Shown here piece after piece: positions 1-17,375 of a stretch of DNA of 64,000 bases (positions are counted from its first letter, which is position 1; every line of letters begins with the position of its first letter). Source of the stretch: Pocillopora damicornis (taxonomy: Eukaryota); the NCBI RefSeq assembly GCF_003704095.1, contig NW_020845487.1:62001-126000 (forward strand). The letters run 5' to 3'. The position numbers were made by a program, and so were the translations under genes. The notes beneath the pieces were generated by a model. That model was given only the letters and a program-made list of their open reading frames with translations, had not been told where the DNA came from and made no database searches.

Positions 1-2
1 GG

Positions 3-3000
3 ACGATGCGGAAGTTGCGGAACCATAGATAAATAGCTCAGTGCATTTGGCATGGCGCGGTAAGCAGGATGGTATGCATTGAAGAGATTGTAAAGAGATG
101 ATGGGGCAGTGGTGTGTATAACTCCAACGCTTCCAGGATTTGGAGCTTGATAAAGAACTCTCGGAATTACGGGACCTTGCTGCTGATATAGTGGAACGAG
201 CTGGCGTTTTCCACGTTTTCTAGGCGGTATGGAGGATTTTGCCGTTTCGACGTGAACGCGAACATCAGGAGAATCATCTTTTGGAGTTGCGGGCAGGTAT
301 TGTTGTAATGGTAATGGAAAACGGGATGGTGCGACTGGAGATCCTTCAAGCTCCTGAATAGCTTTTAAGTTAGCGCCAAAACCAGGCAAATGCTCCATGT
401 TGATTCCGTTTGGATTAGGTATCTCCTGCGCTTCCAGTAAAGCTTGATTCTGTAGAGCAGCTGTCTCAAGTTGATTGTAAACTGAGGGTATTGAATCGGT
501 AGATTCTGGTAAGATTAACTGTCTCTTTGTCACGTCATAACTTGGTTTGTAGGATCGCTTTGCAACTTCATGTTCACGGATCGAGGTGTTCCCTGGTATA
601 ATAGACATCTTCTCTTTTTGTTCAATGGACTTGTGTAAATCTTCTACATCATTAATTGGAGAGACAGATCCATAAAGTGAATGAGAGCCCATGAGCTGTC
701 TTTTCGTTAGTGGGTGTTGATTTATTGTTGATCGCAAAGTCTTTTTCTGAGTCTGGTCGGTGATAATTGTTTCAGTGTTTTCTGTTTTGGTTGTAGTTGT
801 TTTCGAGATTGTCGACTTTGTTATCTGTGGTTTTGATGACTTCCCGTTTAATTTATCTTTTGCTGAATGTTCAATGTGAGACCGATGAAAGTGATGAAAA
901 TCTAGCTCATCTCCATGGATCACATGATTTGGAATTCCCACATAGCTCATACTGTGTGTTACTGTTGAGCCTTGAGGAAGGAATCTGGCTGCAGGACGGA
1001 GAATAAATGAATCATGAGAGTGTAGAATAGGCTGGTTAACTGCGGGAGGTGGTTGATGGAATACTATGGGTGGTTGATGATACACAACAGCAGGCCGATG
1101 CACTACTACCGGCGGTTGATGGTAGATTATAGGTGGACGATGAAGTACTATAGGCGCTCTGTGAACTACGATGTCTGGTCTATGATAAATTTCAGGTGGT
1201 GGATGATAAATGATTGGGGGACGGCTTACCACTATGTCATTCTTTCTGGAGGCTTTTACATCTTTTACCTTTTGAGGATGTAAAATATATCCCTTTTTTC
1301 CCTCTGGTCTGGTTTCCTGTTTTCTGTGCCTTTTCTTTGGTTTTTCTGACTTAGATCTATATTTGAGCACATGCGATTTTCCGAAAGCATTGCCGTATCC
1401 ATAATTCCACCTGCCACCGAAAAAGTTTGGAGCTCCTAAGTAGGTTCCACTGTGTTGTACATGACTTGTGAAAGGAACGAATGCAGGATGAGCCATGTAT
1501 TGTTCATGTGCATGGAAAATCGGTTGTCTCACCATGGGTGCTGGTTGATGAAATACTACTGGTGGCTGATTATAGATAACAGGAGGACGATGAACTATAA
1601 CGGAAGGTTGATGATAGACAACGGAAGGTTGGTGGAGTACAATATCAGGGCGATGCACTATGATATCTGGTTTATGATACACCTCTGGTGGTGGGTGATA
1701 TACAAGTGGCGGCCTTCTTAGTACCACCTGATTCTTCTTACCACCTTTGCCACTCTGATGGCCCTTTTTGTGAAGTTTATCCTTTAGGGAATGATAAGTT
1801 GTTGTTGAATTTTTATCGGGTTCCACCGAACGTTGCTTCCTTATTCCTGCTTTCTTGACTGCACGATGAGGACTTTTGATATGTTTTTTTTCGCTATGCT
1901 TTTCGTGGGTTTTACTGAGTTCTTGGGCTTTGTCGAGGTGTTTCTCAACAAGAGACTTGCTGAATGCACGGGATTTGCTGAATGCGGCAGGGTTGGGACG
2001 AGGCAAAACTCTCCGATTTACAGGAGCAGTGGGCGCGACGTAGTTTGCTCTGTATAGTGAAGGTGAATACCATGGACCTTGGAAAGCGTTCCATCTTTGC
2101 CAACTGTTCATATTGGGTATAGCGTTATTGGAAAAACCGTAACCATACCTCCATCCCCCAGCATAGTAATGAGGTGCTCCAACGTACGTATGCGTATGCT
2201 TTATCTGAGAGGAATACGGAACAAAAGAGGGACGGCTATGGTAAATATCATGTGCAGTGTACATTGGCTGATGTACCATAGGCGAAGGTTGATGAAAAAC
2301 AACTGGAGGTGGATTATAGATAACTGGAGGACGATGGACAACAACAGATGGCTGATGATACACAACTGATGGTTGATGGATTACAAAGTCCGGTCGGTGA
2401 ACGATGATATCAGGTCTGTCGTATATTTCAGGTGGCGGATGATAAATCAAAGCTGGACGTTGTATAACAACCATGTTCTTTTTATGTCCTTTGCGGTGAC
2501 GCTTTTTATCCTCCTTTTGCGGATGCAGGGAAACGCTCTTCGCTTGTGCGTTTCCGCTTAGTTTCTTTTGTGCTCTTTGAGTACCTCCCTTAATATTGTG
2601 CGCCAAGAGTGTAGACTTAAGAAGCGTTTCTGAAGCCTTTGAAGATTCAGATGTGTCCCGTTTGGATTTGCTTCGGGGAGCCTTTTTCGAATGGGTGATT
2701 TGATTCCCTTCCTTTCCTCTTTCAATGGTTCCCACTGATCCTTTTTTAGACCCTTTTTCTACTTTAGATTTGTAAAAGGCATGCCCCATGAAATGTCCAA
2801 TACCATGTCCAAAATGCCCAGGGTAAAAGTGTGGTGCTCCCACGTAAGAACCAGCGTGCGATAAATGTGACATGAAGGGCACGAAGTGAGGATGAGCCAA
2901 GTACGTCTCATGAGCGTGAAAAATTGGCTGATGTACCATTGGCGATGGTTGATGAAAAACAACTGGTGGTTGATGATAAATTACCGGTGGACGGTGTACT

Positions 3001-6000
3001 ACGACAGATGGTTGATGGAAAACAACTGAGGGCCTGTGAATAACAAGGTCTGGTCTGTGCACAACTATGTCTGGCCTGTGATATATTTCTGGAGGAGGGT
3101 GATAGATAAGTGGTGGACGGTGCATTACTACTAAATTTTTCTTGTTGCCTTTGGAGCTATCTTCTCTGCTTCCCTTTTCACTAATTTTTCGAACCTCAGT
3201 TCTGTGAAGCGTTCTTCTACTCTCTTCACTTTCCCGTTCGATATTTTTGCTCTTGTTTTTTTGTTTTCCTGCTTTCTCAACTTTTGATTTTCCAAAGGCA
3301 TGATGGAAACCATAATCGTAGTTGCTTCCTTCCCATCCCCAGTCACCAGGGTAGAAGTGTGGTGCACCTACGTAACTATGGGTATGGTGAACGTGTGATG
3401 CAAAAGGAACAAAATGGGGGTGCGCCAAATAGGTGTCATGTGAATGGAAGATTGGTTGGTGGACCATAGGTGACGGCTGATGGAAGACAACAGGAGGTTG
3501 ATGGTAAATCACTGGAGGTCTATGTACCACTACAGAAGGCTGATGAAAAACTATTGAAGGTCTGTGAATAACGATATCCGGTCTGTGCATGACAACATCT
3601 GGCTTGTGATAAACTTCTGGTGGTGGGTGGTAAATAAGAGGAGGTCGCCGCATAATTACAAGGTTCTTTTTGTTTCCATTAAGGGTAGTTTTTGTTTCGT
3701 TTTTTAGTTTTACAACGTCTTCCAGGCTCTTTGCTTCTTGTTCTAAAGTTCTTTTGCTACCCTTGTACACCTCCTTGTCCCCTTGCTTCTTTTGTTTCTT
3801 GTGAACCTTGGCTACATCTGATTTACCAAACGCACTGTGGAAGCCATACATATCTCCTCCCATTCCCCATCCACTACCATAAAAGTGAGGTGCACCGACG
3901 TAGTTTCCACCAGTAGACACGCTTGATGTGTAAGGCGTAAAGTATGGATGAGAGAGGTAAGTATCATGAGCGTGGAAAATCGGCTGGCTTACCGTTGGTG
4001 ATGGCTGGTGGAAGACAACCGGCGGCTGCTGATAAACCACTGGCGGCCTGTGGACCACCACAGAGGGTTGATGATAAACAACTGGTGGCCTGTGAATAAC
4101 AATGTCTGGTCTGTGCATCACAACATCAGGCTTGTGATATACCTCTGGCGGTGGATGGTAGATTAGTGGTGGACGTCGGATAACAACCTGGTTTTTCTTT
4201 TTAGACTTTCTCTCTGATTTTGGTTTTACTTCCTTGTCATTTTTCGTTTGGTCATCTTTTGCTGCTCTTTTATGTTTGTCTCTCTGTGACTCTTTTGACT
4301 TTTTTCCTTTTAAGGATTCAGAACTCGTTTTGGGTACTTTTGATTTACCAAAGGCGGGACTAAAAAAGCGAGGCTGGCTCCAGCCATAATTCCATCCACC
4401 AGGATAATGGTGTGGGCTTCCTACGTAGGTGGATGTGTGCTGTATGTGGGAAGAATATGGCACTGGCACAGGATGAGCAACATAGGTATCATGAGCATGC
4501 ATAATCGGCTGATGAACTAACGGTGGAGGTTGGTGAAAGACTACTGGAGGTTGTTGGTATATAACTGGAGGTCTGTGGACAACGACTGAAGGTTGATGAT
4601 AAACAATCGAGGGACGATGTATAACGATGTCCGGTCGATGAACAACTATGTTTGGTCTGTCATATATCTCGGCTGGTGGATGGTATATCATCGGTGGCCG
4701 AGCTATAACAACTTTGTTCTTTTTGTGTCCTTTCGATTTTTCTGACGATTTTGCTTTTGTTTCGTCTTCATCACGAGTGTCGCGCTTTAATTTTGAATGA
4801 AATTTGTCCCCGCTCTTGCTTGTTTTCTTCTGGCTGTTTTTTTCGTCCTTGCTTGTCTTTCTATTCTCTACCTTTTCAACAGCTGATTTTCCAAACGCAT
4901 GACCAACATATGCACCGAACGGCTGACGATGGAAATAGTGTGGAGCTCCAACATACGTTGCTGTGTGATGAATCTGGGATGTGTATGGTACTGGAATAGG
5001 ATGGGCAAGATAAGTGTCATGGACGTGCATAATTGGTTGGTTAATCATGGGCGGAGGCTGGTGAAATATAATCGGTGGTTGGCGGTAAATTATTGGAGGT
5101 CTGTGAACCACAACTGAGGGTTGATGATACACTATTGATGGTCTATGCACCACGATATCTGGGCGGTGCATTATTACGTTTGGTCGATCATAGATCTCCG
5201 GTGGCGGATGATAAATCATTGGCGGTCTGTGAACAACAACTAGGTTCTTTCTTTCGCCTTTTTTATCCTCAGATTTTTCACCGACCTCTTTTGCCGTGGT
5301 ACTCTTAGCAATATGCCCTCCCTTGCCAGAGTTGTCTTCTTTTGATACCTTTGAGTTATCTTTTTCTATGGATGACTTTCCAAAAGCAAATCTCATTGGA
5401 TGAAAAAGATGTGGTACGTGGTACACGGGTGTTGGATGGTGCAGTACTATAGGAGGTCTGTGTATTATAACGGGAGGTCTGTGCACTACAACAGGAGCTC
5501 GATGGATAAGAATAGGTGGACGGTGTACGACCAATGGAGGTGGATGCATCACAACGGTTGGCTTATCAAATATATCTGGAGGTGGATGATATACTATTGG
5601 TGGCTGATGAACTACAAGGCCGACGTTCTGTTTCTTTGCGTTTTCATTATTTACCAATTTTTCAGTGCGTGAACGGCTTGCCTCTCTTTTTTCGTCCGGC
5701 TTTGTTTTCTGTACGTCTCCTCTTTCCTTTGTTTCAGACTCAATCTTGTAACTGGAGGTGTTCATTCGTTCTATATGCGATTTACCGTAAGCAGTTCCTT
5801 GAACAACAGACCCAAAGTAATTCCCAGAAGGATGCAAATAAGGCGACGTAGGAACCATTATGTGCTGTGCATGCGGTGTGAAGATTTCGTGGGAGTGAAT
5901 CACAGGGGTGTGAATTATCGGGGGCGGGTTGTGAAAGACGACTGGCGGCTGGTGATAAATTATCGGAGGATGGTGGACGATCGTTGGTGGTTGTTGGAAC

Positions 6001-9000
6001 ATTATCGCCGGCCTGTTGTAAACCAGTGGTGGTAAGTGCATCAAAATATCTGGTTGTCGATATACTTGAGGGGGTGGGTGATAAATAAGAGGAGGTCGAT
6101 GTATAATAACGACGTGTTTGCGGTGTCCTGGGTGAGCAAAAGCACTTATAGGACGGAGATGGTAGAAGCGCTTACTTCCGCGATGGTGATGACTGTGTCG
6201 GTGATGTTGGCTGTGATGATGATGGCGATGATGGTGATGGAGGTGACGTTTGCTCAATTCAGCTGACCTCCGTTTCCTAGACGCGTTGTTGTTCTTTTTC
6301 AGAAATGAGTCTTTGAGATGTTTCCTTTCGTGTTTCTTTTTGGATGACTTACTTTTGCTATTTTCTACTTCTGATCTTCCAAAAGCAGGTCCATACGAAG
6401 AATAGCCATATGCGTCATATGCGGGAGATGGTGTGTATCCATTAATACCAGAATAGCCGTAATTAGATGCGTAGTGGTATTGGGCTGTCTGTTCTGCAGG
6501 TAGATGTCCCGAAAGCCCCCATCCGTAATCGTTATGCCCAGGATAGAGATGAGGCGCTCCTACATATGTTGAGGAGTGTGCTATGTGGCTGACTTGTGGG
6601 TGAAACACAGGGTGAGCTACATAGGTATCATGGGCATTGTAAATTGGCTGACTAACCATTGGTGAGGGCTGATGAAACACTACTGGAGGCTGTTGATAAA
6701 CCACCGGTGCTCTGTGCACGACTACAGATGGCTGGTGGTAAACGATCGAGGGTCGATGAATTACAATATCTGGTCTGTGCACTACGATATCTGGCCGGTC
6801 ATAAATCTCAGGTGGCGGATGATAGATCATAGGAGGTCGTGCGACGATGACTTTATTCTTTCTCTCTCCTTTGGTATGCTTGCTTTTTTGCTGTGTTGGT
6901 GCGGCATGGACTTTCCCTAAATGTTTACGTTCGTGGTCTTTTAACTCATTAGTGTACTTCTGGTGTTCTAGGTGCCCTTGGTCACTGTTCTTTACGGGAT
7001 TTGCGCCCTGTGGTTTTGAAACTTCTGTTCTTCGAGCCCAGTGTGCTTGGTTTAGCGTGGGAAACATGTGTCCCGTTGGACCGCGAGGGATGTTGCCCGG
7101 ATAGTTAGTGACCCCGCCATGGGGTAAGCCTACGTAATGGCCGGCGTCATTTACAACGGAACCCATGTGAGATGCAAAAGCCATTGGGTGAACAACAAAA
7201 CTGTCATGTGAATACAGGACAGGCTGGTTAACTGCTGGAGCAGGTTGATGAAAGACGATTGGAGGTTGATGATAAACGACTGCAGGTCTATGAACAACAA
7301 CAGGAGGCTGATGATAGACAATAGGTGGTCTGTGGATAAGAATAGGAGCTCTGTGTACAACAATGTCTGGTCTGTGGTATACCTCTGGTGGTGGATGGTA
7401 GATAATAGGAGGCCTGTTGACGACCACATCTTTCTTCTTCTTACGGCTATCTTTTTTCTTTCTGTCATGATCTGTTTCCACAGCGCTTTTCTTTGACTTC
7501 TTGTCTGCAACAGAGCGTTTCGGCTTGTTAGAACTTTTGCCTTTGGAATCCTCGTTAGTAGCGTCTTTAAATGATTGGTCAGATTGTGATGTTTTCATAA
7601 TGTCGTTCTCAGTACTTTTATCTTCTATTCGTGCAACGGTGGATTTCCCATAGCCACAACCAGGGCAGTGCATGTGAATCATATGCATAGGATAGTGATG
7701 AATCAGGTGGGAATGATGAACTATCATTTGCGGTCCCTTGTGTATTATAATTGGCGGTCGATGGAAGAGTATTGGGTGGTGGTGAATGATATATGGACGA
7801 CGATGAATTATTATTGGTGGCCGGTGAAATACTAATGGAGGGCGATGAACTATTATGGGTGGTCTGTGTATAAGGACTGGTTGACGATGAATTATGATAG
7901 GGGGGCGATGTACTAGTATTGGTGGTCTGTGAAAGACGATTGGGTGACGGTGGACTATTATGTCTGGCCTGTGAACAACTATTGAAGGTCGATGAATCAT
8001 ATGGCTCGGTGGATGATACAATATTGGTGGCCTGTGAATTATTAGTAGTGTCTTTTTGGTGCTATTGGTGTTTTTGTCTGCGTTTTCGTCAGGTGTAGAG
8101 GTTTGAGTTTCCTCACTACTACGTTTATACATTTCATAAGCTGTCTCACCTTCAAATGTTGTCCGAGGGTCTGCTAATGCTCGCTGTATCCTTGCACTGG
8201 CCCCAATACGACTGTTAACGCTGCTGGTCAGCGGTTTTGTGTAAGGACTCCAAACATCGTCGATGGAGCGTTGGATTCTTGTTGCTGTTTCCCCCGAAAT
8301 AACAGTGTGTCGCTGGGGAGACAAGGAAAATTCACTAGAATACCCACTTTCCACTGGGTCGCTGAAGTATGGAAGCAAGCTGTGAAGGCTTCTCTGAATT
8401 CTAGTTTGGGCCCCAACAGGACTACGTGTCTCCCACTGCTTATGGATCAACGAATCAGACAATGCTCGCGCAATTCGTTCTCCTGCTCCAAGTTTAGCAC
8501 TGTTCTCCTTATTTTGCTTTGCACCATCTGCATGCTCCGTCTTGTTACTTTGTTTTTCATTGGTCGGCGTATCAGATTCTGTTTTTGTCTTCGTTTTCTC
8601 GCCAGAGTCTTGGTCATTTTCCTCAACCCTATGAACTTTGTCTCTACGGGTGGCTTTCATGGGGACATGAGATTTTCCAAAAGCTCCAGTGCCAATCCCA
8701 TGCATAAATATCTCTTCGTGAGGAACACCCTTGTATGTTGCTACGTGGCGGACATGTGAAGCATAGGGAATAACAACAGGCTTAGTAACCCAGGTATCGT
8801 GTGAATGCAGAACTGGTTGATGGACCATTGGTGGTGGTTGGTGAAAAACTATGGGAGGTTGATGGTAAACAATGGCTGGACGGTGAACCACTACTGGTGG
8901 CTGATGATAGATAATTGGGGCACGATAAAGTACGATAGGAGCACGGTGCACAACAATATCGGGTCTGTGATAAATCTCTGGTGGTGGATGGTAGATGATA

Positions 9001-12000
9001 GGTGGTCTATGAATGACTACGGAGTTCTTTTTGTTTGCTTTCTCTGTAACCTCCTTTGCCTTGTGATATTTCACCGGGAAACTATGACTTTTGTGAAGTT
9101 TCGTTCCTGTTTCTGTTTTGTCTTTGCTCCTTGTGAGAGGAATATGCTTTCGTCTAATGCGATGCCCTTTTCTCCCTGGCTTCGACTTTTTGTGACCTCT
9201 CTTGCCCTTCACAGTGGCCCTTGTGTCCCCCTTTTCTTCTTCAGTCTTTTCCTTCGCAGGTACCTTGGATTTTCCATAAGCCATGTAATGAACACCTCCG
9301 CCGTGTCCGTGATAATATGCATGTGGTATATGATACAGGTGTCCCACGTGATGCATTCGAGATCCGTATAGTCTCACCAAAGGTCTGTGGACGTAAGTGT
9401 CATGTGACCTGAATACTGGTTGGTGTACTACAGGCGGAGGTTGGTGGAAAATAAGAGCCGGCTGATGGTATACAATGGCTGGCCTGTGCACAATAACTGG
9501 TGGCTGATGGTAGATAATTGGAGCTCGGTGAATAACGATAGGAGCACGGTGAACCACTATTTCTGGCCGGTGATAAATTTCTGGTGGAGGGTGATAAATC
9601 ACCGGAGGGCGTCTCACAATAACTGCGTTTTTCTTTCCTCCTTTTTGGCTCTTTGCCTTTTTAGTTGTCAGACGTGAAGTAACGTTTTCTTTTCTTTCGT
9701 GAAAAGGTTTGTGGGAGGAATCTTCCTCTAGCTTTGTTGAGTTGGTATCACCACTTATTTTGTTTCGTGCGGATGCTTCCTCTTCTAACGATTTGGTGTG
9801 TTTCAAAATATGTGACTTGTAGAATGAGTATCCGTGTCCTCCTCCAAAGTGATGAACGGTGTAAGCGTCTGGAACGCCAACGTATGTGTGATGATGCAGC
9901 ACTCGCGAGGAGTAAGGTACCACCACTGGGTGAGAAATCCAGGTATCATGGGACTTTAGCACTGGCTGATGAACCATTGGTGGCGGCTGATGAAATACCA
10001 ATGGAGGCTGGTGATACACTATTGCTGGACGATGCACAACAACGGGTGGCTGGTGATAAAATATCGGTGCTCGGTGAATCATAATTGGAGGTCTATGGAC
10101 AACAATTATTGGGCGATGATAAATTTCAGGTGGCGGGTGATATATTATTGGAGGCCGTCTCACTATCACAGTGTTCTTTTTTCCTGCTTTTTCGTTTGTC
10201 TCATTCTTTGCTTTCTTACTGTTGTCCTCAAAGGAGGTCTTTTTCGAGGCAACTGCTGTAATGTTGTTACTGTCTGCAACAGTGGCGTTCTCTGACGAAG
10301 AAGAACCTTCTATTTTTGATCTTTTTCCTATGGGTGGGGGTCTTCCGAACAGTGGATTTCCGTAATTTGTAATAACGTTAGGCACCCCTACGTAATGTCC
10401 AAAATCTCGTACAACAGAGCCATGATGCGTTGCATAAAATGATGGATGGACAGTGAAAGAATCATGCGAATATAGAAGCGGTTGACTAACAGCAGGAGGT
10501 GGTTGATGAAAAACAATTGGCGGTTGATGATACACCACGGCCGGCCGATGAACAATTACGGGTGGCTGATGGTAGATAATGGGTGGTCTGTGTATCACTA
10601 GGGGAGGGCGGTGAACGACTATATCTGGGCGGTGATAAATCTCTGGTGGAGGGTGATAAATTATTGGAGGGCGATTGACAACTACGTCTTTCTTCTTTTT
10701 GTTTTGTGTGCCGTCTTTGGAATCGTCTCCGTCGTCCTGTTCTGTTTCCCTTCTTAACTTAAGTTTCCCTTTAATGCGCTCTGACGAGGTGTCTCTTTTA
10801 TTTACTACGTCGACGTCCATATTTTTGTAGCTTAATTTTTCCTTGGACCCCTCAGTTGACGTAATAAAGTCATATTGATCATAGATTTCTCTCTTTTTTA
10901 AGACCTTTGGTTTCCACAAGTTTGTGAAATAAGCCATGTAATCGCCCAAACTATCACGCTTTGTTTTCTTGAAATGATCTGGCTGTGTGCTGTTCTTAGC
11001 TTGATGTGGTACTTTTCCTTTTCTGTAAGAGCAATGTGCCCCATGACATCCCTCTCCATAGTCACCAGAGTACACGTGGGATGGAATTCCATAGTATGTC
11101 TTCGCATGGGAAACCATTGATGCTGTGTGATACACCATTGGCTTTGTAACCCAAGTATCATGCGAGTGTAAGATTGGCTGATGAACAACTGGCGGAGGCT
11201 GATGGAATACTATCGGTGGTTGGTGATATATTATTGCTGGTCGGTGAACGACTACGGGAGGCTGATGATAAATTATTGGTGGTCGATGTAGCATAATTGG
11301 CGCTCGATGAACCACAATATCTGGTCTGTGATATATCTCAGGTGGCGGGTGATAAATGATAGGAGGACGGTGCATGACAATTGAATTTTTACGATTTCCT
11401 TTAACTTCCTTTGGCTGCTGTGCGTGTGGGTGCGACAGGCTATGGGTCTTTGTATCATTTTTCTTTTCGTCGGATTTGGCATTTCTTCGGTATTGATGTC
11501 GCTCGTGTTTTCGTGAAGTAAATACATTGAGTCGGTGATATCGTTTTAAAGTTTTCTCCCAACTTTTGATATTCACTTTCCGTTTGCTTGCCTTCCCCGC
11601 ACCATGCTGTTTGTACAATGGGGCCTTTCCAGTATCGTGTTTGTCTGTTTCATTTTTCTTACCCGACAGAATTTTAGTTTTCTTAAAGGCCATCCTTGGA
11701 GCCTCAGAAGGTGAATTAACATTCCTAGCACCTAGTGATCTTACAGGGATTTCGTTGGTAGGCGCCATGCCTTGCATACCACCATTAACTCCTCCTGGTA
11801 AACCTTCCATTGCTCCCATAGGCCCTAGAGAATTAAGGCCTGCTGTACCCATGTTGCTCATGTCATTGATACCGCCAAAAGTGTTTATATTGTTCATTTG
11901 ATTTGCACTATTAAAATTGTTCAGTCCGTTCATTCCATTCATCATAAAATTTTGTGGATTCACTCCACCGAGTAGACCAGGTGGTGGATTACCAGCAACG

Positions 12001-13892
12001 TTTATGGGTGGAGGCATTGGTGTTATTATGTTCTGTCGTTGGGTGAATGGCATTCCCCCTCCAATCGGAAGCTGTGGCATTGTCCCCTCTTCAGGCATCA
12101 TACCCATCTGCGGCGATTCCATGCCATTCATTATCGGTATGTTATTATAAAACTGTCGTCTAAATGGACCGTTCATGTGTCGGAAACGCCTTTTGTGACG
12201 CTTGCGACCATGATGCTCGGGATATTCCTCCGGCTCCTCCATTCGCGACCTCTCATATAAGTAAGAATCGCGAAAATGGTGGCGATGATGGTGTGGGTAC
12301 CAATAATGCAAATGACGGCGATAAAATGGTGCGTCGTCGTAAAAACTTTCAAAACCACGCCTTTCAGGATAAGAGTGGTATGGATTGTAAAAATGACGAC
12401 GATGGAAATGTCCGTACGATCTTCGCATGCCAGGATACCAGTGGTGATGGAGATGGTATGGTGGATAATGGTAATGGTGGTAAAAAGATCGTTCTTGTGC
12501 AGCCGCTGACGCAGAATGAGAACCTGGGCGTGAGACCACCTGTAAAGAAGCAGGTTTGGCTTTGACTTTTACACCGGCAGAATTTGCGTTTATTTCCAAA
12601 TCGGCGGATTTATCGTCCACTTGAAAATGTCCCACTTCAGGCCCATTGGATGGTTTTGCTTCGCCGTCCCTTTCAGCATATGAATCAAGATCAGAAGCGC
12701 CTCGAGTTTTCACAATTTCCGATCCACTGTTTCCTAAGGCGTCTCGAATTGGTCCTACGGGTGCATTTTGAATTTGAGGCACGGTGTGTATTGCTGCTTC
12801 GCTTTCTTGAGATGATGATTGCGTTTTCGTTGACAAATTCTCCTTGCGTCCCAGTGCAGAAGCGGCGTTTTGTTCACCTGATGTAGCTGTTGTGACTTGC
12901 GTTTCTAATTTCTCAGTGGGGGTCTTAGTTTCATCACCACTGACCTGTTTATTGACATTTTCTTTGATTAATGTTTGAGCTTCCTGTGGACTTGCTTGCT
13001 TGCCTACGATAACGGCTTTAGCTACACTATTTCCTAACTGTGATGGAGACCCCGGAAATTTGACAGCGTTCTTGTCGTTAGGAAGACTTCCCATCTTTTT
13101 ACTCTCGTCAGCGTTATCCTGAACACTTCGCACCTGTGCGTTTTCATCAACTACCGTACTTACTGTTGTCTTGCTTTCCTGAACATTTGCACTGTTTTTC
13201 TCTGCAGAACGTCCACTACTATTTACATTATCACTACTTGAATCAGCTTTATCGTTCACGCCATTGTTTTCCGTTTGCAGTTCCCCACTTTCTTCTTGTT
13301 TTTTGTGAACATTGTTCTCATTTTCCCTACTCGAAGAATCCTCTCCTTCCTTTAATTCCTCTGATTTTGATTTACTGCTGACGGAGTTTTCCATCGACCC
13401 TTGCTGATGATCAGCAACAGAACTGTCAGTGGCTCCATTATCAGAGCCTTTTTTCTCTTCCTCAACTGGGACGCCAATCGATTCGCTTTCTGGCTGGTCG
13501 ACTTTAGAGCGGACATTCTCTTCAGTGTTTAAGTGCAATAAAGTATCTTTATCCACACCAGAATCTGAAGTCAAAGGCTGTATGGGTGTTTCAATACCCT
13601 GTCTCTTTTGAGGCTCTACAGTCAACAGTTGTTCATAACTACTCTTTGGCAACTCGTCCTCGACTTCGGTTGGACTTCGCTTGTCCCTCTCTATATGGTC
13701 GCCATTTTTATAGTTTATATTGTCTGGCCAATCTCCTTCATTCAAGCCTCCTAGATTACCTGTTGTATATGTACTCAGAAGATCTTGTTTAGGGTACGGC
13801 TTGGCTTGTATTGGCGACAAGTTAAGGTGAAGGAGAAGAGAATGAAATAGTGCTAAAGTCGCCAGAATATTTGGCGGCGACCAGCCAAACAT
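3..13892 (-). CDS. Gene A: giant single-exon secreted His/Pro-rich polyprotein precursor, >=4,630 aa, 3'-partial (runs off the left edge)
   Basis: ATG at 13892 gives MFGWSPPNILATLALFHSLLLHLNLSPIQA-KPYPKQ (signal-peptide-like). Hand translation of both ends and of all modules is in one frame (codon starts = 2 mod 3), ending ...YRAMPNALSYLSMVPQLPHR at nt 3. The ORF track lists no minus-strand ORF in this frame in 1-13.9 kb, as expected if no stop exists. Order: acidic pro-region, His/Tyr and Met/Gly/Asn segments, 18 His-Pro modules with basic spacers, then a Gln/Pro-rich tail with KR sites. Confidence 0.92.
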   Translation of the reverse strand, partial: MFGWSPPNILATLALFHSLLLHLNLSPIQAKPYPKQDLLSTYTTGNLGGLNEGDWPDNINYKNGDHIERDKRSPTEVEDELPKSSYEQLLTVEPQKRQGIETPIQPLTSDSGVDKDTLLHLNTEENVRSKVDQPESESIGVPVEEEKKGSDNGATDSSVADHQQGSMENSVSSKSKSEELKEGEDSSSRENENNVHKKQEESGELQTENNGVNDKADSSSDNVNSSGRSAEKNSANVQESKTTVSTVVDENAQVRSVQDNADESKKMGSLPNDKNAVKFPGSPSQLGNSVAKAVIVGKQASPQEAQTLIKENVNKQVSGDETKTPTEKLETQVTTATSGEQNAASALGRKENLSTKTQSSSQESEAAIHTVPQIQNAPVGPIRDALGNSGSEIVKTRGASDLDSYAERDGEAKPSNGPEVGHFQVDDKSADLEINANSAGVKVKAKPASLQVVSRPGSHSASAAAQERSFYHHYHYPPYHLHHHWYPGMRRSYGHFHRRHFYNPYHSYPERRGFESFYDDAPFYRRHLHYWYPHHHRHHFRDSYLYERSRMEEPEEYPEHHGRKRHKRRFRHMNGPFRRQFYNNIPIMNGMESPQMGMMPEEGTMPQLPIGGGMPFTQRQNIITPMPPPINVAGNPPPGLLGGVNPQNFMMNGMNGLNNFNSANQMNNINTFGGINDMSNMGTAGLNSLGPMGAMEGLPGGVNGGMQGMAPTNEIPVRSLGARNVNSPSEAPRMAFKKTKILSGKKNETDKHDTGKAPLYKQHGAGKASKRKVNIKSWEKTLKRYHRLNVFTSRKHERHQYRRNAKSDEKKNDTKTHSLSHPHAQQPKEVKGNRKNSIVMHRPPIIYHPPPEIYHRPDIVVHRAPIMLHRPPIIYHQPPVVVHRPAIIYHQPPIVFHQPPPVVHQPILHSHDTWVTKPMVYHTASMVSHAKTYYGIPSHVYSGDYGEGCHGAHCSYRKGKVPHQAKNSTQPDHFKKTKRDSLGDYMAYFTNLWKPKVLKKREIYDQYDFITSTEGSKEKLSYKNMDVDVVNKRDTSSERIKGKLKLRRETEQDDGDDSKDGTQNKKKKDVVVNRPPIIYHPPPEIYHRPDIVVHRPPLVIHRPPIIYHQPPVIVHRPAVVYHQPPIVFHQPPPAVSQPLLYSHDSFTVHPSFYATHHGSVVRDFGHYVGVPNVITNYGNPLFGRPPPIGKRSKIEGSSSSENATVADSNNITAVASKKTSFEDNSKKAKNETNEKAGKKNTVIVRRPPIIYHPPPEIYHRPIIVVHRPPIMIHRAPIFYHQPPVVVHRPAIVYHQPPLVFHQPPPMVHQPVLKSHDTWISHPVVVPYSSRVLHHHTYVGVPDAYTVHHFGGGHGYSFYKSHILKHTKSLEEEASARNKISGDTNSTKLEEDSSHKPFHERKENVTSRLTTKKAKSQKGGKKNAVIVRRPPVIYHPPPEIYHRPEIVVHRAPIVIHRAPIIYHQPPVIVHRPAIVYHQPALIFHQPPPVVHQPVFRSHDTYVHRPLVRLYGSRMHHVGHLYHIPHAYYHGHGGGVHYMAYGKSKVPAKEKTEEEKGDTRATVKGKRGHKKSKPGRKGHRIRRKHIPLTRSKDKTETGTKLHKSHSFPVKYHKAKEVTEKANKKNSVVIHRPPIIYHPPPEIYHRPDIVVHRAPIVLYRAPIIYHQPPVVVHRPAIVYHQPPIVFHQPPPMVHQPVLHSHDTWVTKPVVIPYASHVRHVATYKGVPHEEIFMHGIGTGAFGKSHVPMKATRRDKVHRVEENDQDSGEKTKTKTESDTPTNEKQSNKTEHADGAKQNKENSAKLGAGERIARALSDSLIHKQWETRSPVGAQTRIQRSLHSLLPYFSDPVESGYSSEFSLSPQRHTVISGETATRIQRSIDDVWSPYTKPLTSSVNSRIGASARIQRALADPRTTFEGETAYEMYKRSSEETQTSTPDENADKNTNSTKKTLLIIHRPPILYHPPSHMIHRPSIVVHRPDIIVHRHPIVFHRPPILVHRPPIIIHRQPVLIHRPPIIVHRPPLVFHRPPIIIHRRPYIIHHHPILFHRPPIIIHKGPQMIVHHSHLIHHYPMHMIHMHCPGCGYGKSTVARIEDKSTENDIMKTSQSDQSFKDATNEDSKGKSSNKPKRSVADKKSKKSAVETDHDRKKKDSRKKKKDVVVNRPPIIYHPPPEVYHRPDIVVHRAPILIHRPPIVYHQPPVVVHRPAVVYHQPPIVFHQPAPAVNQPVLYSHDSFVVHPMAFASHMGSVVNDAGHYVGLPHGGVTNYPGNIPRGPTGHMFPTLNQAHWARRTEVSKPQGANPVKNSDQGHLEHQKYTNELKDHERKHLGKVHAAPTQQKSKHTKGERKNKVIVARPPMIYHPPPEIYDRPDIVVHRPDIVIHRPSIVYHQPSVVVHRAPVVYQQPPVVFHQPSPMVSQPIYNAHDTYVAHPVFHPQVSHIAHSSTYVGAPHLYPGHNDYGWGLSGHLPAEQTAQYHYASNYGYSGINGYTPSPAYDAYGYSSYGPAFGRSEVENSKSKSSKKKHERKHLKDSFLKKNNNASRKRRSAELSKRHLHHHHRHHHHSQHHRHSHHHRGSKRFYHLRPISAFAHPGHRKHVVIIHRPPLIYHPPPQVYRQPDILMHLPPLVYNRPAIMFQQPPTIVHHPPIIYHQPPVVFHNPPPIIHTPVIHSHEIFTPHAQHIMVPTSPYLHPSGNYFGSVVQGTAYGKSHIERMNTSSYKIESETKERGDVQKTKPDEKREASRSRTEKLVNNENAKKQNVGLVVHQPPIVYHPPPDIFDKPTVVMHPPPLVVHRPPILIHRAPVVVHRPPVIIHRPPIVLHHPTPVYHVPHLFHPMRFAFGKSSIEKDNSKVSKEDNSGKGGHIAKSTTAKEVGEKSEDKKGERKNLVVVHRPPMIYHPPPEIYDRPNVIMHRPDIVVHRPSIVYHQPSVVVHRPPIIYRQPPIIFHQPPPMINQPIMHVHDTYLAHPIPVPYTSQIHHTATYVGAPHYFHRQPFGAYVGHAFGKSAVEKVENRKTSKDEKNSQKKTSKSGDKFHSKLKRDTRDEDETKAKSSEKSKGHKKNKVVIARPPMIYHPPAEIYDRPNIVVHRPDIVIHRPSIVYHQPSVVVHRPPVIYQQPPVVFHQPPPLVHQPIMHAHDTYVAHPVPVPYSSHIQHTSTYVGSPHHYPGGWNYGWSQPRFFSPAFGKSKVPKTSSESLKGKKSKESQRDKHKRAAKDDQTKNDKEVKPKSERKSKKKNQVVIRRPPLIYHPPPEVYHKPDVVMHRPDIVIHRPPVVYHQPSVVVHRPPVVYQQPPVVFHQPSPTVSQPIFHAHDTYLSHPYFTPYTSSVSTGGNYVGAPHFYGSGWGMGGDMYGFHSAFGKSDVAKVHKKQKKQGDKEVYKGSKRTLEQEAKSLEDVVKLKNETKTTLNGNKKNLVIMRRPPLIYHPPPEVYHKPDVVMHRPDIVIHRPSIVFHQPSVVVHRPPVIYHQPPVVFHQPSPMVHQPIFHSHDTYLAHPHFVPFASHVHHTHSYVGAPHFYPGDWGWEGSNYDYGFHHAFGKSKVEKAGKQKNKSKNIERESEESRRTLHRTEVRKISEKGSREDSSKGNKKNLVVMHRPPLIYHPPPEIYHRPDIVVHRPDLVIHRPSVVFHQPSVVVHRPPVIYHQPPVVFHQPSPMVHQPIFHAHETYLAHPHFVPFMSHLSHAGSYVGAPHFYPGHFGHGIGHFMGHAFYKSKVEKGSKKGSVGTIERGKEGNQITHSKKAPRSKSKRDTSESSKASETLLKSTLLAHNIKGGTQRAQKKLSGNAQAKSVSLHPQKEDKKRHRKGHKKNMVVIQRPALIYHPPPEIYDRPDIIVHRPDFVIHQPSVVYHQPSVVVHRPPVIYNPPPVVFHQPSPMVHQPMYTAHDIYHSRPSFVPYSSQIKHTHTYVGAPHYYAGGWRYGYGFSNNAIPNMNSWQRWNAFQGPWYSPSLYRANYVAPTAPVNRRVLPRPNPAAFSKSRAFSKSLVEKHLDKAQELSKTHEKHSEKKHIKSPHRAVKKAGIRKQRSVEPDKNSTTTYHSLKDKLHKKGHQSGKGGKKNQVVLRRPPLVYHPPPEVYHKPDIIVHRPDIVLHQPSVVYHQPSVIVHRPPVIYNQPPVVFHQPAPMVRQPIFHAHEQYMAHPAFVPFTSHVQHSGTYLGAPNFFGGRWNYGYGNAFGKSHVLKYRSKSEKPKKRHRKQETRPEGKKGYILHPQKVKDVKASRKNDIVVSRPPIIYHPPPEIYHRPDIVVHRAPIVLHRPPIIYHQPPVVVHRPAVVYHQPPIVFHQPPPAVNQPILHSHDSFILRPAARFLPQGSTVTHSMSYVGIPNHVIHGDELDFHHFHRSHIEHSAKDKLNGKSSKPQITKSTISKTTTTKTENTETIITDQTQKKTLRSTINQHPLTKRQLMGSHSLYGSVSPINDVEDLHKSIEQKEKMSIIPGNTSIREHEVAKRSYKPSYDVTKRQLILPESTDSIPSVYNQLETAALQNQALLEAQEIPNPNGINMEHLPGFGANLKAIQELEGSPVAPSRFPLPLQQYLPATPKDDSPDVRVHVETAKSSIPPRKRGKRQLVPLYQQQGPVIPRVLYQAPNPGSVGVIHTTAPSSLYNLFNAYHPAYRAMPNALSYLSMVPQLPHR
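900..11395 (-). repeat. 18 tandem His-Pro heptad modules (about 85-160 aa each) inside gene A
   Basis: Consensus [KR]K-N-xVVx-HRPPIIY-HPPPEIY-HRPDIVV-HRPDIVI-HRPSIVY-HQPSVVV-HRPPVIY-HQPPVVF-HQPPPMV-HQPIxHSHDTY...TYVGAPH...AFGKS. Approximate module starts (high coordinate): 11390, 10690, 10170, 9630, 9030, 8050, 7430, 6860, 6120, 5630, 5245, 4720, 4190, 3665, 3140, 2480, 1730, 1240. Confidence 0.9.
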
Positions 13893-16800
13893 TATGTGGC
13901 TTTTTAGTACATTAAAACTTTCCCAAGAAAATGAGCGCGTTCTCTCCAACCATTGTTTTGTTATTACATCACAAGTAGTTTCTATCGCCGGTCTGTGAAC
14001 AGTAAAAAGATGATATAAGGGGCGCGGAATTTGGATTAAGTCTTCTTATCTCATAAAACCAGATGGAACACCTGTTAGTTTCCAATCAAAAGTATACTTT
14101 GTGACAGGTATTCTTGTTACGGCAATCAAAACCTCCCTCTATGAGTGGTGAACTCGCTCTATGAGGTGCACAAAATACTGGTGCCTCTTTAAGTTCAATG
14201 GACAATTAAAGTGTGGGGACTTTACACCAGAAATACACAGTCACAATAACCTATTTTTTTTACTCACATAAATACTTGCAAAGTATCGAAGAAGGAAAAC
14301 ATGATTAAGCATTCTCTGTCCACCAGAGAAGCAGCGTTGCGGTTCACATCACATAACAATGATAATTAAATGTTTTTGATTTGCTTTAAGAACTCTTCGC
14401 TGACGAAATATTGGGAATTGATGTATGTGTTCAGATGTTTTAAACATTGAACTCATTTTCATTCTGTAACATGTTCAAGAGGCGATGTTTTGACTACCGC
14501 CTGCCTTATGAACAAAATGTTGGTGTCATGTCAAAGGATACAAAATAAGATATAGCTTTCTTTAAATTAAACGCTTCAATGCATTTCCTTCTATTTTCGC
14601 GGAAAAGTATGTAAACCACCTTCTAGTCAAGTGCTTGTTTTATTATTTTTTTTATTTTAACGAACCCAAAGTGGACTTAACCGAGAGGCAAACAAATAAT
14701 TTTACCAGGAAGTAACTGATAAACAAACTGTTGATGCTTTGACCAATAATTGCCCCGATGCAGAAACAATTTAAATTTAGTTTTCAAACGAAATTCTAAA
14801 ACAAAGCGGACGCAAAGCAGACTTAACCAGGTAACAAACAAATACTATTACCTTGATGTAACAATTAAACAAACTTTTGATCCTTGGATGGGTAATTGCC
14901 CCAATGCCGTAAAATGCTTTAAATTTAGTTTCCTAAGGATTTCTTAAACAAAACTATAGCTGAAAGATTTCATTCACAATATTTTATTTTGACTGAAATG
15001 CATTTGGATGACAGTTGAAATTTCAGTTCAGGTGACCGGGTACAACTCAGATTTTAGTGCGACAGACCATTAGCCTCAAGAACTTGGTGATGTTCTCATT
15101 TCCGTCAAAATTCAGTTTCGTATTTCAACATGCATCCAATTTAGCATGATTTCTCAAGCGATTTTACCATGGGGACTTTTTGTATTAATCGGTTTACATT
15201 TCAGCACGCGATGTAATTAATTAAGCACCGTTTTAAGGGATTGTTGGTCGGTTAAACACAATATGTTCGTCAGATAAAATATTTGTCGACTTTTTTTGGA
15301 TATTGCGTTGTAAGGAGGGGGCTTTAAAGTATTAAACGACCTCTTGTAACTGAGCCCTCACTTTTAAAGCAGATTTCGAAAAGTATTAGTATTGAAAATC
15401 TTACTTCATCGCCTCCTCACTACTTGTCTTGCCAAAATCTATTTCCGTTGGAAAGATGATCGTAGCTGCTGATCACGTTTTGTGGTAAACGCTGAGACGC
15501 TTTTCTTCAGAAAACAGGCTTTATTTGTCATTATTATTATGTAATGATAGTTTTAGAAGGCCAACTACAGTTGCGAAGATCAAGTGTCTATTGCACTTTG
15601 TTGGAATGATAGCTGCTTATTTTTGTAACCGAGGAAAATAGGATGCATTTTTTAGGGCTATGTTTCGGGTCACTGTCAATAGAAAACTGCAGAGAAGTCG
15701 GCTTAATTATTTTTACAAAAATTTCTTAACCGTTGCTATCTTCTTCTCTTTTTTCTTTTTTCTAAACTTGCTTCCGATAATGGAAAAGCTACTGGTGGCC
15801 GAAAATAAGTCTTACGAAGCTTACCGAACAAATTCTAACAAACAGGCCTTAAGTGAAACCCCTGCAAATGGTCTGCGCTTCGCTAGATTCTTTAATGCAT
15901 CTATAGTTTCAGTTAAATGACTGAAAACTCGTCAGCGTTCAATACGGGTTGTACTTTTAGGTGAAAAACTCCAATTCAAAGGAGATACCCAACTCATCAA
16001 GGGAGAATGTGTAATCTGTTATGTTTCCAAAAGAACTAACTCGATGGAGCTTATTGTCCCTCAATTGTCTCTCTTCCGCTAGTTCCTTTCCATGCAGCAT
16101 CAGTTTAAATATCATAGCATTACCGTGCATTGTACTCATTAACCGTTTAACTTATATTATTAGCTTTCTTTACGAATCGGAATGGGACGTGGTGTGTCTG
16201 TGCGTATCATGGTTAAATCGATGACAATTTTGAGTTTATTTGCGTTGTTCACTACTCTTCTAATATCCTTCATGAATGGTGTCTGTAGACAGAGGTAAAC
16301 TATAGGGTTACTCGGTAAATACGACACTTTCACTTCAAAGGAGAAGACTTTTCAACTTCTTGACGAAAAAACACCTGTCTTTATGAGTTGTTCACCTTTC
16401 ACACCTTATGACTATGTTGACAAAGCGTCGACTTATATCTAATTATAATCACAGACGAAATTAATTTAACTCTTTAAGGGTTCAACCAAAACAAAAGAGT
16501 TGTTGACCTTTTTCAACTACCATCAAACAAACGCCGAACCACTTGTTGACCAAAATCTCGATTAGCCGTGTTCAAACTGAGGATGTGACAAAGTTGATTA
16601 ACGCTGGCTGCATTTTGGGGTTTTTGTAAAATATAATTGGTTACAGAATTCCTCGGAGACTTCTAATTGACTTAAATGCGTTTGCTTGCGTATCGATTGT
16701 TTGTTTTGCCGTGTACATTAATATTTTATGAAAGACTGTCGTTTGCCTGTTCAAATTATACAAAATAATTGGAAAGAAAAACCAAGTTCTTGAATAAAAT

Positions 16801-17375
16801 GCGTATTAAAAAATCTCGGGCAAAATGATAATTAGTAGTTTTTGTTATATGCGTTAAAGAGTGACTTAATTTTATTTTTTAGTTAGGTACTTGTTCAGTG
16901 CAACCGACCCGCTGTAGGAGGTAACCAAATATGGCAAGGTACCCGCTGGATCTTTATCGCACTAACACAGCCATAACAACTTGAACAAAGCAAAATCAAT
17001 CTCTCCTGACTTGCCTAGCAGGTGACCTAAATAAGTTATTCATGAAAGTAACCATTTATTTCTCTCTAAGACAAAATAAAAGAAATTAATTGTATTACTT
17101 GCATTTTAAGCGTGAAACCTCATTTAAATGAAGAGAAATACCAAAAGGAAATTGGGTTTTAAAGTTCATGGTTAAGTGATAAAATTTATTGGATAACTTT
17201 CACAGATTCATTGTGTTTCGTCTTTTAAATGTTTTATTTGACACGTTATTTTCAGTATTACAAAAGAATATTTAATAACTTACGTAAGTGTACTTTTCTC
17301 TTATCTGCAACACTAGCGCGGTCTTATCAAGGGTTTAGTTTGGTCTTTCGTGTCTCGCGGAAGACTATGATCAAC

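Follow-up and report, generated by a model that had tools for sequence, protein, structure and literature searches.

Profilaggrin and the other proteins of the S100-fused type are giant, His-rich tandem-repeat precursors encoded in one very large exon, and the units of profilaggrin are cut apart by proteases at short linkers. Tropoelastin, which is secreted and nearly free of Cys, alternates hydrophobic Pro/Val-rich segments with Lys-rich segments, and insect chorion and cuticle low-complexity proteins, which belong to insoluble extracellular structures, carry short periodic Pro/Val/His/Tyr motifs. Among the structural proteins of the cnidocyst, the cnidarian stinging capsule, minicollagens, NOWA, spinalin, cnidoin, and CPP-1 are Cnidaria-restricted, secreted, repetitive, and Pro- and/or His-rich, with a pro-region that ends in KR. 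Here, we describe a gene of the reef coral Pocillopora damicornis that resembles each of these systems in part. It begins within a 64,000-nt stretch of DNA, hereafter the window (positions 62,001 to 126,000 of contig NW_020845487.1, our C2122:62001-126000, in an assembly of 234.35 Mb and 4,393 contigs), and runs on the minus strand from window position 13892 past the left window edge. We refer to it as the giant gene.

The likeness to profilaggrin is one of analogy. The coral protein has neither sequence homology to profilaggrin nor an S100/EF-hand head; its N-terminal region, which begins with a signal-peptide-like leader, gave no match in Pfam. Whereas filaggrin is cytoplasmic, the coral protein carries a probable signal peptide and would presumably be extracellular or organellar. 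Its modules, unlike those of profilaggrin, are ancient, individually orthologous, and not recently homogenized, and processing of the protein is suggested by a conserved punctuation of short motifs. Elastin is encoded by many small exons and built on VPGVG-type repeats without His, whereas the coral gene is one exon with strict His heptads, and no homology between the two was detected. Compared with the known cnidocyst structural proteins, the coral protein is 10 to 100 times larger and is without a Cys-rich domain or collagen triplets: a regular-expression search of the protein found no minicollagen/NOWA Cys-rich domain (CX3CX3CX3CX3CC), and nowhere do six or more Gly-X-Y triplets follow one another.

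A preliminary description of the window, made from its letters alone, had reported a minus-strand frame that stays open from an ATG at 13892 to the window edge. Translation of the reverse complement of 3-13892 bears this out, with 4,630 codons and no stop; in random sequence with roughly 5% stop codons, the chance of such a run is ~e^-230. The nearest in-frame stop 5' of the ATG is 52 codons off, at 14048. When the frame is extended into the adjacent DNA, where the description had expected its stop, it runs 1,609 codons further and reaches a TAG at contig positions 57173-57175. The complete open reading frame (ORF) comprises 6,239 codons (18,720 nt) without any N or X. Codons 1-4630 form a single exon at window 3..13892 on the minus strand, as assigned from the open frame, the NCBI model, and colinear RNA contigs; the other 1,609 codons, with the TAG, follow on the same strand at C2122:57173-62002, left of the window, as assigned from the open frame. 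The encoded protein has a mass of ~705 kDa and an isoelectric point (pI) of 9.8. The short ORFs called over this region are shadows, as had been proposed: the 43 ORFs of at least 60 aa over 1-13892 (60-188 aa) comprise 35 that are antisense and eight in another minus-strand frame. The giant ORF itself was missing from the ORF track because ORFs that run off the source are unlisted, and the lesson for annotation is that a track dropping edge-crossing ORFs can miss the largest gene present. The gene is not hidden in the wider sense that the description had claimed. NCBI already carries a 6,206-aa model on the same contig (375,129 bp) that matches the ORF except for 33 aa removed, and many metagenome gene calls likewise contain the giant protein. 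The further claim that a single coding exon of this length is unusual in animals holds as to rarity and fails as to uniqueness, with AHNAK, profilaggrin exon 3, and the central mucin exons as comparable very long coding exons. AHNAK and the central mucin exons are likewise tandem-repeat coding exons of >12-18 kb, of unrelated sequence and chemistry; in the coral gene, in distinction to both, the entire coding sequence and apparently the 5' untranslated region (UTR) too are unspliced.

Evidence of transcription comes from public data. Of the words sampled from window 1-6000, at least half are present in each of 22 public runs, nine of which, from five studies, are recorded as RNA. RNA contigs from four runs of four studies (polyA, oligo-dT or random-primed) were placed on window 1-6000, and those of all four runs are colinear with the genome over this interval, with no splice. 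One RNA contig of 18,526 nt spans the entire 6 kb gap-free, and one extends ~950 nt beyond the stop codon, with polyadenylation signals within that stretch. The spacers between the modules described below are accordingly not spliced out, a possibility that the preliminary description had named. A full-length unspliced mRNA is the simplest reading because the 18.5-kb contig occurs in oligo-dT libraries; rare spliced forms or DNA carry-over would be compatible with the contigs. The 33 aa by which the NCBI model differs from the ORF correspond to a modeled 99-nt in-frame GT..AG intron at 2050..2148 (minus strand, residues 3916-3948), which sits within an insertion specific to module 16. This stretch is retained, bridged unspliced, in RNA contigs of all four runs; it is a rare exitron at best, and a prediction artifact is more likely. 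Apparent joints and a 21-nt omitted row in the read alignment were rejected as splices or indels, as they are secondary matches between paralogous modules within one contig.

Upstream of the ATG, a conserved block at 13893..14129 (minus strand) was delimited by coral-coral conservation and is the probable 5' UTR and core promoter, the promoter role being a reading of that conservation. It is 74% identical over 248 aligned columns to the equivalent place in another coral (L007:7264-7507). The 237 nt before the ATG are thus conserved and contain a TATA-like TTATATC ~125 nt upstream of the ATG; therefore, a 5' intron of the giant gene is unlikely. Taken together, these data show that the giant gene of this pocilloporid coral is real, transcribed, and contained in a single exon, and it is well represented in adult coral RNA contigs.

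The preliminary description had spoken of a secreted precursor with 18 homologous but diverged modules separated by basic spacers, and each element of this picture is upheld by the full protein, secretion at the level of a prediction. Residues 1-30 (13803..13892, minus strand, as are all features of the protein) form a probable signal peptide, a hydrophobic leader that stands just before a conserved AKPY, and the N-terminus is hydrophobic in all coral and Nematostella orthologs. The N-terminal region, residues 31-833 (11394..13802), was defined from the conservation profile of 11 orthologs and passes from an acidic Ser/Thr/Asn-rich part through a conserved element to a His/Tyr/Arg-rich part and then a Met/Asn/Gly/Pro-rich part. 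Conservation across the 11 orthologs is 0.90 for residues 421-480 (window 12453-12632) and only 0.35-0.39 for residues 181-360.

The array of 18 modules and their Lys-rich spacers occupies residues 834-4335 (888..11393), as delimited by alignment and hidden Markov model (HMM) envelopes. From the N-terminus, modules 1 to 5 lie at 11037-11393, 10347-10697, 9825-10181, 9282-9635, and 8679-9032. Module 6, a long variant, lies at 7662-8057 and is followed by modules 7 (7086-7439), 8 (6510-6863), and 9 (5763-6122), by a short variant, module 10 (5277-5636), and by module 11 (4896-5252). Modules 12 to 18 lie at 4371-4724, 3846-4199, 3318-3671, 2790-3143, 2130-2483, 1386-1739, and 888-1247. The module HMM gives 19 matches, since the long module 6 splits in two, and the count of 18 is supported by HMM and alignment alike. 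Each module is ~118 aa long and consists of a K-K-N-x-V-V start, ten heptads, and a conserved His/Tyr-rich tail. The heptads take the form [R/Q]-P-P-[I/V]-[I/V]-[Y/V/F]-H, for example R-P-P-I-I-Y-H, which places a His at every seventh residue; the recurrence of His at lag 7 is 4.25 times the expectation, and lags 7, 14, and 21 are all at about fourfold. The tail reads S-H-D-T-Y...T-Y-V-G-A-P-H and usually finishes in a sequence like A-F-G-K-S-K-V-P-K. The Lys-rich spacers that follow the modules are 8-207 residues long and are indeed basic, with 23% K+R and a pI of 10.1. The C-terminal region, residues 4336-6239, was assigned from its unit motifs; it starts at 3..887 and lies mostly left of the window. 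It contains ~14 units that begin with [KR]RQ and a hydrophobic residue, end in PxVxVxV-E-T-A-K-S-x-[VI]-P (for example P-R-V-S-V-N-V-E-T-A-K-S-x-I-P), and are followed by a basic spacer. The units measure ~40-50 aa between KRQ and ETAK-K/R, and the terminus of the protein is one more such strand motif.

Purifying selection, which the preliminary description had deduced from the intact frame, is apparent at two time depths. Between modules, synonymous sites are saturated (median proportion of synonymous differences, pS, about 0.8), while the corresponding non-synonymous value, pN, is 0.15 in the heptad core. Because of this pattern, the modules are old duplicates kept by selection and not products of recent homogenization. 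Within the genus, a Tara Pacific Pocillopora metagenome scaffold with 99.2% DNA identity over 5,838 codons differs from the gene by 77.5 synonymous and 53.5 non-synonymous differences and contains no stops. The resulting pN/pS is 0.20 overall, 0.10 in the modules, 0.32 in the spacers, and 0.19 in the C-terminal region. Across the 11 orthologs, all from Hexacorallia, the heptad cores are 85-100% conserved and spacer-dominated 60-residue stretches 23-60%.

Named orthologs were found in Stylophora, Oculina, Acropora, Nematostella (about 5,000 aa), and Hydra (4,502 aa), all labeled "uncharacterized"; the closest is that of Stylophora pistillata, with 88% identity. Ortholog identifiers include Hydra LOC100210570, Nematostella LOC116618347, Stylophora SpisGene9031, and EukProt TCONS_00024867, the last probably of Clytia. 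In at least 12 further coral assemblies, gene callers also report ORFs of 5,400-6,300 aa without interruption. The gene of Hydra extends over 22.9 kb and contains introns. The intronless state is seen in this coral, and the uninterrupted ORF calls suggest that it is common to stony corals.

A maximum-likelihood tree of 43 modules, with support values of 81-98 in the Shimodaira-Hasegawa-like approximate likelihood ratio test (SH-aLRT), pairs coral modules 1-5, 8, 10, 11, and 19 with Nematostella modules 1-5, 6, 8, 9, and 15; coral modules 2, 8, and 19 fall together with modules 2, 6, and 13 of Hydra. In the center of the array, the coral modules make up clades specific to their lineage. Between the reef coral and Hydra, single modules of 118 residues are almost the same in sequence, and they have kept their order along the protein. 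Over hundreds of millions of years, the modules have hardly changed. Because modules pair by position across species in the tree, we conclude from these sequences that the array predates the split of coral, Nematostella, and Hydra and has not been homogenized since.

A profile search with the module against 1.84 billion representative proteins returned ~40 sequences that match the whole module, and those inspected look like cnidarian fragments of the same gene. The weaker matches among the 408 at E<=0.001 were rejected as homologs, being unrelated heptad low-complexity proteins of which the inspected ones look bacterial. Among the matches inspected in this search, none that looked non-cnidarian was convincing, and the family accordingly appears, so far, in Cnidaria alone: corals, sea anemones, and Hydra. 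In the coral's own genome, module matches are confined to one 6,290-aa open frame and the module occurs in no other gene, which makes the giant gene apparently single-copy.

Two observations concern the gene models of the orthologs. In Hydra, an open frame that follows directly after the annotated stop of LOC100210570 (L006:32907-34934, plus strand) is called as a separate 568-aa gene; its product bears units of the coral C-terminal type and closes with K-P-E-V-H-V-H-I-S-T-E-K-S, in agreement with the C-termini of the coral and Nematostella proteins. The LOC100210570 model is probably truncated or split. In Nematostella, the predicted isoforms are set apart by an alternative C-terminus and by a 69-aa segment, in frame, that corresponds precisely to one C-terminal unit including its KRRQ, so that exitron-like, in-frame models are a recurrent feature of the family.

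Two motifs frame each spacer: [KR]-S-x-[VIL]-[P/E] follows the preceding module, and K-K-N-x-V-V leads into the next one. We measured the enrichment of such punctuation motifs against block shuffles that preserve local composition, and their conservation as occurrence in register among the 11 orthologs. The terminator [KR]Sx[VIL][PE] was observed 20 times against a shuffled mean of 1.9, and the pre-module motif [KR]K[NKDH]x[VI][VI] 18 times against 0.3, each being in register in about 80-86% of orthologs. [KR]RQ was observed 17 times (shuffled mean 2.6; in register in 84% of orthologs) and PxVxVxV 12 times (0.6; 77%). Overall, the punctuation is enriched 7- to 60-fold and is kept although the spacer-dominated stretches around it are poorly conserved. 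The terminator is also present in the Hydra ortholog.

The same punctuation recurs in a neighboring gene. Gene B (window 17367-23258, plus strand) is divergent from the giant gene and stands head-to-head with it, ~3.4 kb away. Its secreted product opens with a signal peptide and a pro-region whose last residues are KR. The modules that come next are Gly/Tyr-rich or of the CGG-repeat (Cys/Gly-rich) kind, chemically quite unlike those of the giant protein, and each ends in [FY]x[KR]S.[VIL]P before a Lys-rich spacer. In another coral (L007), the ortholog of gene B likewise stands head-to-head with a 5,720-aa ortholog of the giant gene. Because two genes with different module contents share this code, the punctuation would seem to serve processing or cross-linking rather than the fold of a module. 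Between the two genes, the blocks 13893-14129 and 16962-17289 are 74-83% conserved with the other coral and are candidate core promoters and UTRs of the pair. Further along the window, a cluster of small ORFs on both strands at 37622-62793 specifies products that look secreted and are extremely rich in Cys, with CGGCGG runs, a common ~65-aa Cys domain, and CCCHCC-type runs, and a 627-aa ORF at 31963-33846 (minus strand) contains a long Gly/Ala-rich run and is broken by an assembly gap at 32667-32766. With gene B and the Cys-rich ORFs, the window would therefore represent a cluster of lineage-restricted, low-complexity genes of structural type. The vertebrate epidermal differentiation complex, in which Gly/Cys-rich structural genes are clustered, offers a comparison for gene B and the Cys-rich genes at window 37-63 kb.

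Searches against domains, folds, and the literature gave little. Pfam returned no family at E<=1 for the part of the protein within the window and nothing convincing for the C-terminal part or for single modules. Chorion_3 (PF05387) scores 41.4 bits on the Hydra ortholog against a cut-off of 22, by way of four short stretches at profile positions 144-201, and matches seven of 16 single coral modules (best E 0.12). Membership in Chorion_3 was rejected, as about 58 of 277 profile positions match in the Hydra ortholog, all on heptads, and the whole coral protein is unmatched. Cuticle_3 (PF11018) matches five of 16 modules in single-protein searches (best E 1e-4) and does not match the whole protein. 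We read both resemblances as compositional, that is convergent, and not as common descent. A profile search of the PDB gave one match only, at chance level; ESM Atlas values of 0.79 for the module and 0.77 for the conserved N-terminal region are noise; and AlphaFold2, run on one module with a 16-module alignment, returned a predicted local distance difference test score (pLDDT) of 50.6 without secondary structure. Such an absence of Pfam, PDB, and AlphaFold2 signal is typical of fibrous or low-complexity structural proteins. In the open full-text literature, which leaves subscription journals and most supplements outside, no paper was found that names any of the ortholog identifiers or any module motif, and identifier searches in two supplement sets, those of the Stylophora cell atlas and of a paper comparing nematocyst proteomes, gave no match. 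Within the reach of the open literature, the family is undescribed, and public records list it as "uncharacterized".

Our favored reading, to which we assign a probability of roughly one half, is that the giant protein is a secreted structural polyprotein. The 18 His-bearing hydrophobic heptad modules would be its load-bearing, assembling parts. Their heptads may form short hydrophobic strands of beta or polyproline II type with a titratable His at every seventh position, and the modules could associate with one another or with a partner once the His side chains become uncharged or take up metal. The fast-evolving, Lys-rich spacers and their punctuation would be the sites of cleavage, cross-linking, or both; as processing sites of the secretory pathway, they could be of the proprotein convertase type, with Gln converted to pyroglutamate. 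The data establish the structure and transcription of the gene, the architecture of its product, the selection acting on it, its phyletic range, the orthology of modules by position, and the conservation of the punctuation. Secretion, cleavage, His-switched assembly, and a structural role are what we infer, and several observations weigh against them. At the protein level, no evidence of cleavage products, localization, or cell type was found, and structure prediction gave nothing usable. Cys is nearly missing, with four in 6,239 residues here and none in the Nematostella ortholog; therefore, the protein lacks the disulfide chemistry that is characteristic of the known wall proteins of cnidocysts. 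The spacers of the Hydra ortholog are acidic (pI 5.6) instead of basic and Hydra has a single [KR]RQ, so spacer charge and [KR]RQ are not universal in the family. Finally, the coral protein contains 180 dibasic sites, so composition may explain some of the punctuation, an objection that the shuffles counter only for the motifs tested.

The structural role could also be filled without cleavage. The protein may act as an intact, giant fiber or matrix molecule, similar to tropoelastin, in which the punctuation marks cross-link sites for lysyl oxidase or transglutaminase; its location could be the mesoglea, the apical glycocalyx, mucus, or an adhesive. This reading, a credible one that we nevertheless hold to be on the unlikely side, accounts for the alternation of hydrophobic modules with Lys-rich spacers, for the placement of Gln beside Lys in [KR]RQ, and for the near absence of Cys, which calls for cross-linking other than by disulfides. 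The strict module order is easier to explain if the units stay connected, and single modules weakly resemble low-complexity proteins of insect cuticle and chorion. It accounts less well for the Hydra ortholog, in which spacer charge is not conserved, or for [KR]RQ plus a hydrophobic residue directly at unit starts, which looks more like a convertase site.

A narrower proposal, which overlaps the structural readings as a non-exclusive sub-case, is that the protein is a core component of the cnidocyst, in its matrix, tubule, or spines. In its favor, the family is apparently limited to Cnidaria, where it occurs in both Anthozoa and Hydrozoa. As in nematocyst proteins, a pro-region with a KR end follows the signal peptide; the richness in His and Pro is shared with spinalin and CPP-1; and secreted proteins rich in Gly and Cys are encoded close by, in gene B and the neighboring cluster. 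We regard the assignment as tentative and rather improbable: a minicollagen-type Cys-rich domain and a Gly-X-Y run are both missing, the identifier searches of the literature and of the two supplement sets brought no expression or proteome evidence, and phyletic restriction alone does not identify an organelle. With similar reserve, and as speculation, the secreted structural polyprotein could be pictured as an ancient core building material of cnidarians, most attractively of the stinging capsule. A 700-kDa polyprotein would be cut at the punctuation that it shares with gene B, its modules would be soluble in an acidic vesicle and would form an insoluble, Cys-free assembly upon a rise in pH or the binding of metal, and the locus would be a counterpart of the vertebrate epidermal differentiation complex.

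Release of diffusible products is more doubtful still. In this scheme, the protein would be a precursor of bioactive peptides or mini-proteins, His/Pro-rich and antimicrobial or signaling in nature, freed at dibasic sites and, in the case of the C-terminal units, bearing an N-terminal pyroglutamate. Cnidarian peptide precursors are often multi-copy, and the predicted signal peptide, the abundance of dibasic sites, and the in-register [KR]RQ motifs would suit such a precursor, as would the general plan of a leader and repeated units flanked by basic sites (17 [KR]RQ, 18 pre-module K-K-N) and the length of the C-terminal units. The near identity of the ~118-aa modules between coral and Hydra is unlike fast-evolving antimicrobial peptides, though, and the modules are distinct, positionally orthologous variants and not repeats of an identical peptide. 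With lengths of 40-170 aa, the units are not short (under 30 aa), near-identical copies; most are without a Gly-basic amidation signal, Gly before [KR]S being found in some units only; and their hydrophobic, beta-branched content predicts insolubility rather than diffusion. That the long frame is an artifact or non-coding, such as a repeat array lacking stops by chance, has low-complexity composition and nothing else in its favor and can be dismissed as vanishingly improbable, being excluded by the purifying selection measured on the coding sequence, by full-length orthologous ORFs as far as Hydra, by modules that diverged at synonymous sites yet left the frame intact, and by polyadenylated RNA.

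The giant gene is among the largest intronless protein-coding genes likely to be met in any animal genome. Its heptad, in which His is fixed and Cys almost lacking, represents a simple design for a pH- or metal-switched material that may interest biomaterials research, and the punctuation common to the giant gene and gene B points to an undescribed system of processing or cross-linking. A 705-kDa protein that is probably secreted, found across the phylum, strongly constrained, and without a known domain probably marks a part of cnidarian biology that has so far gone unstudied.

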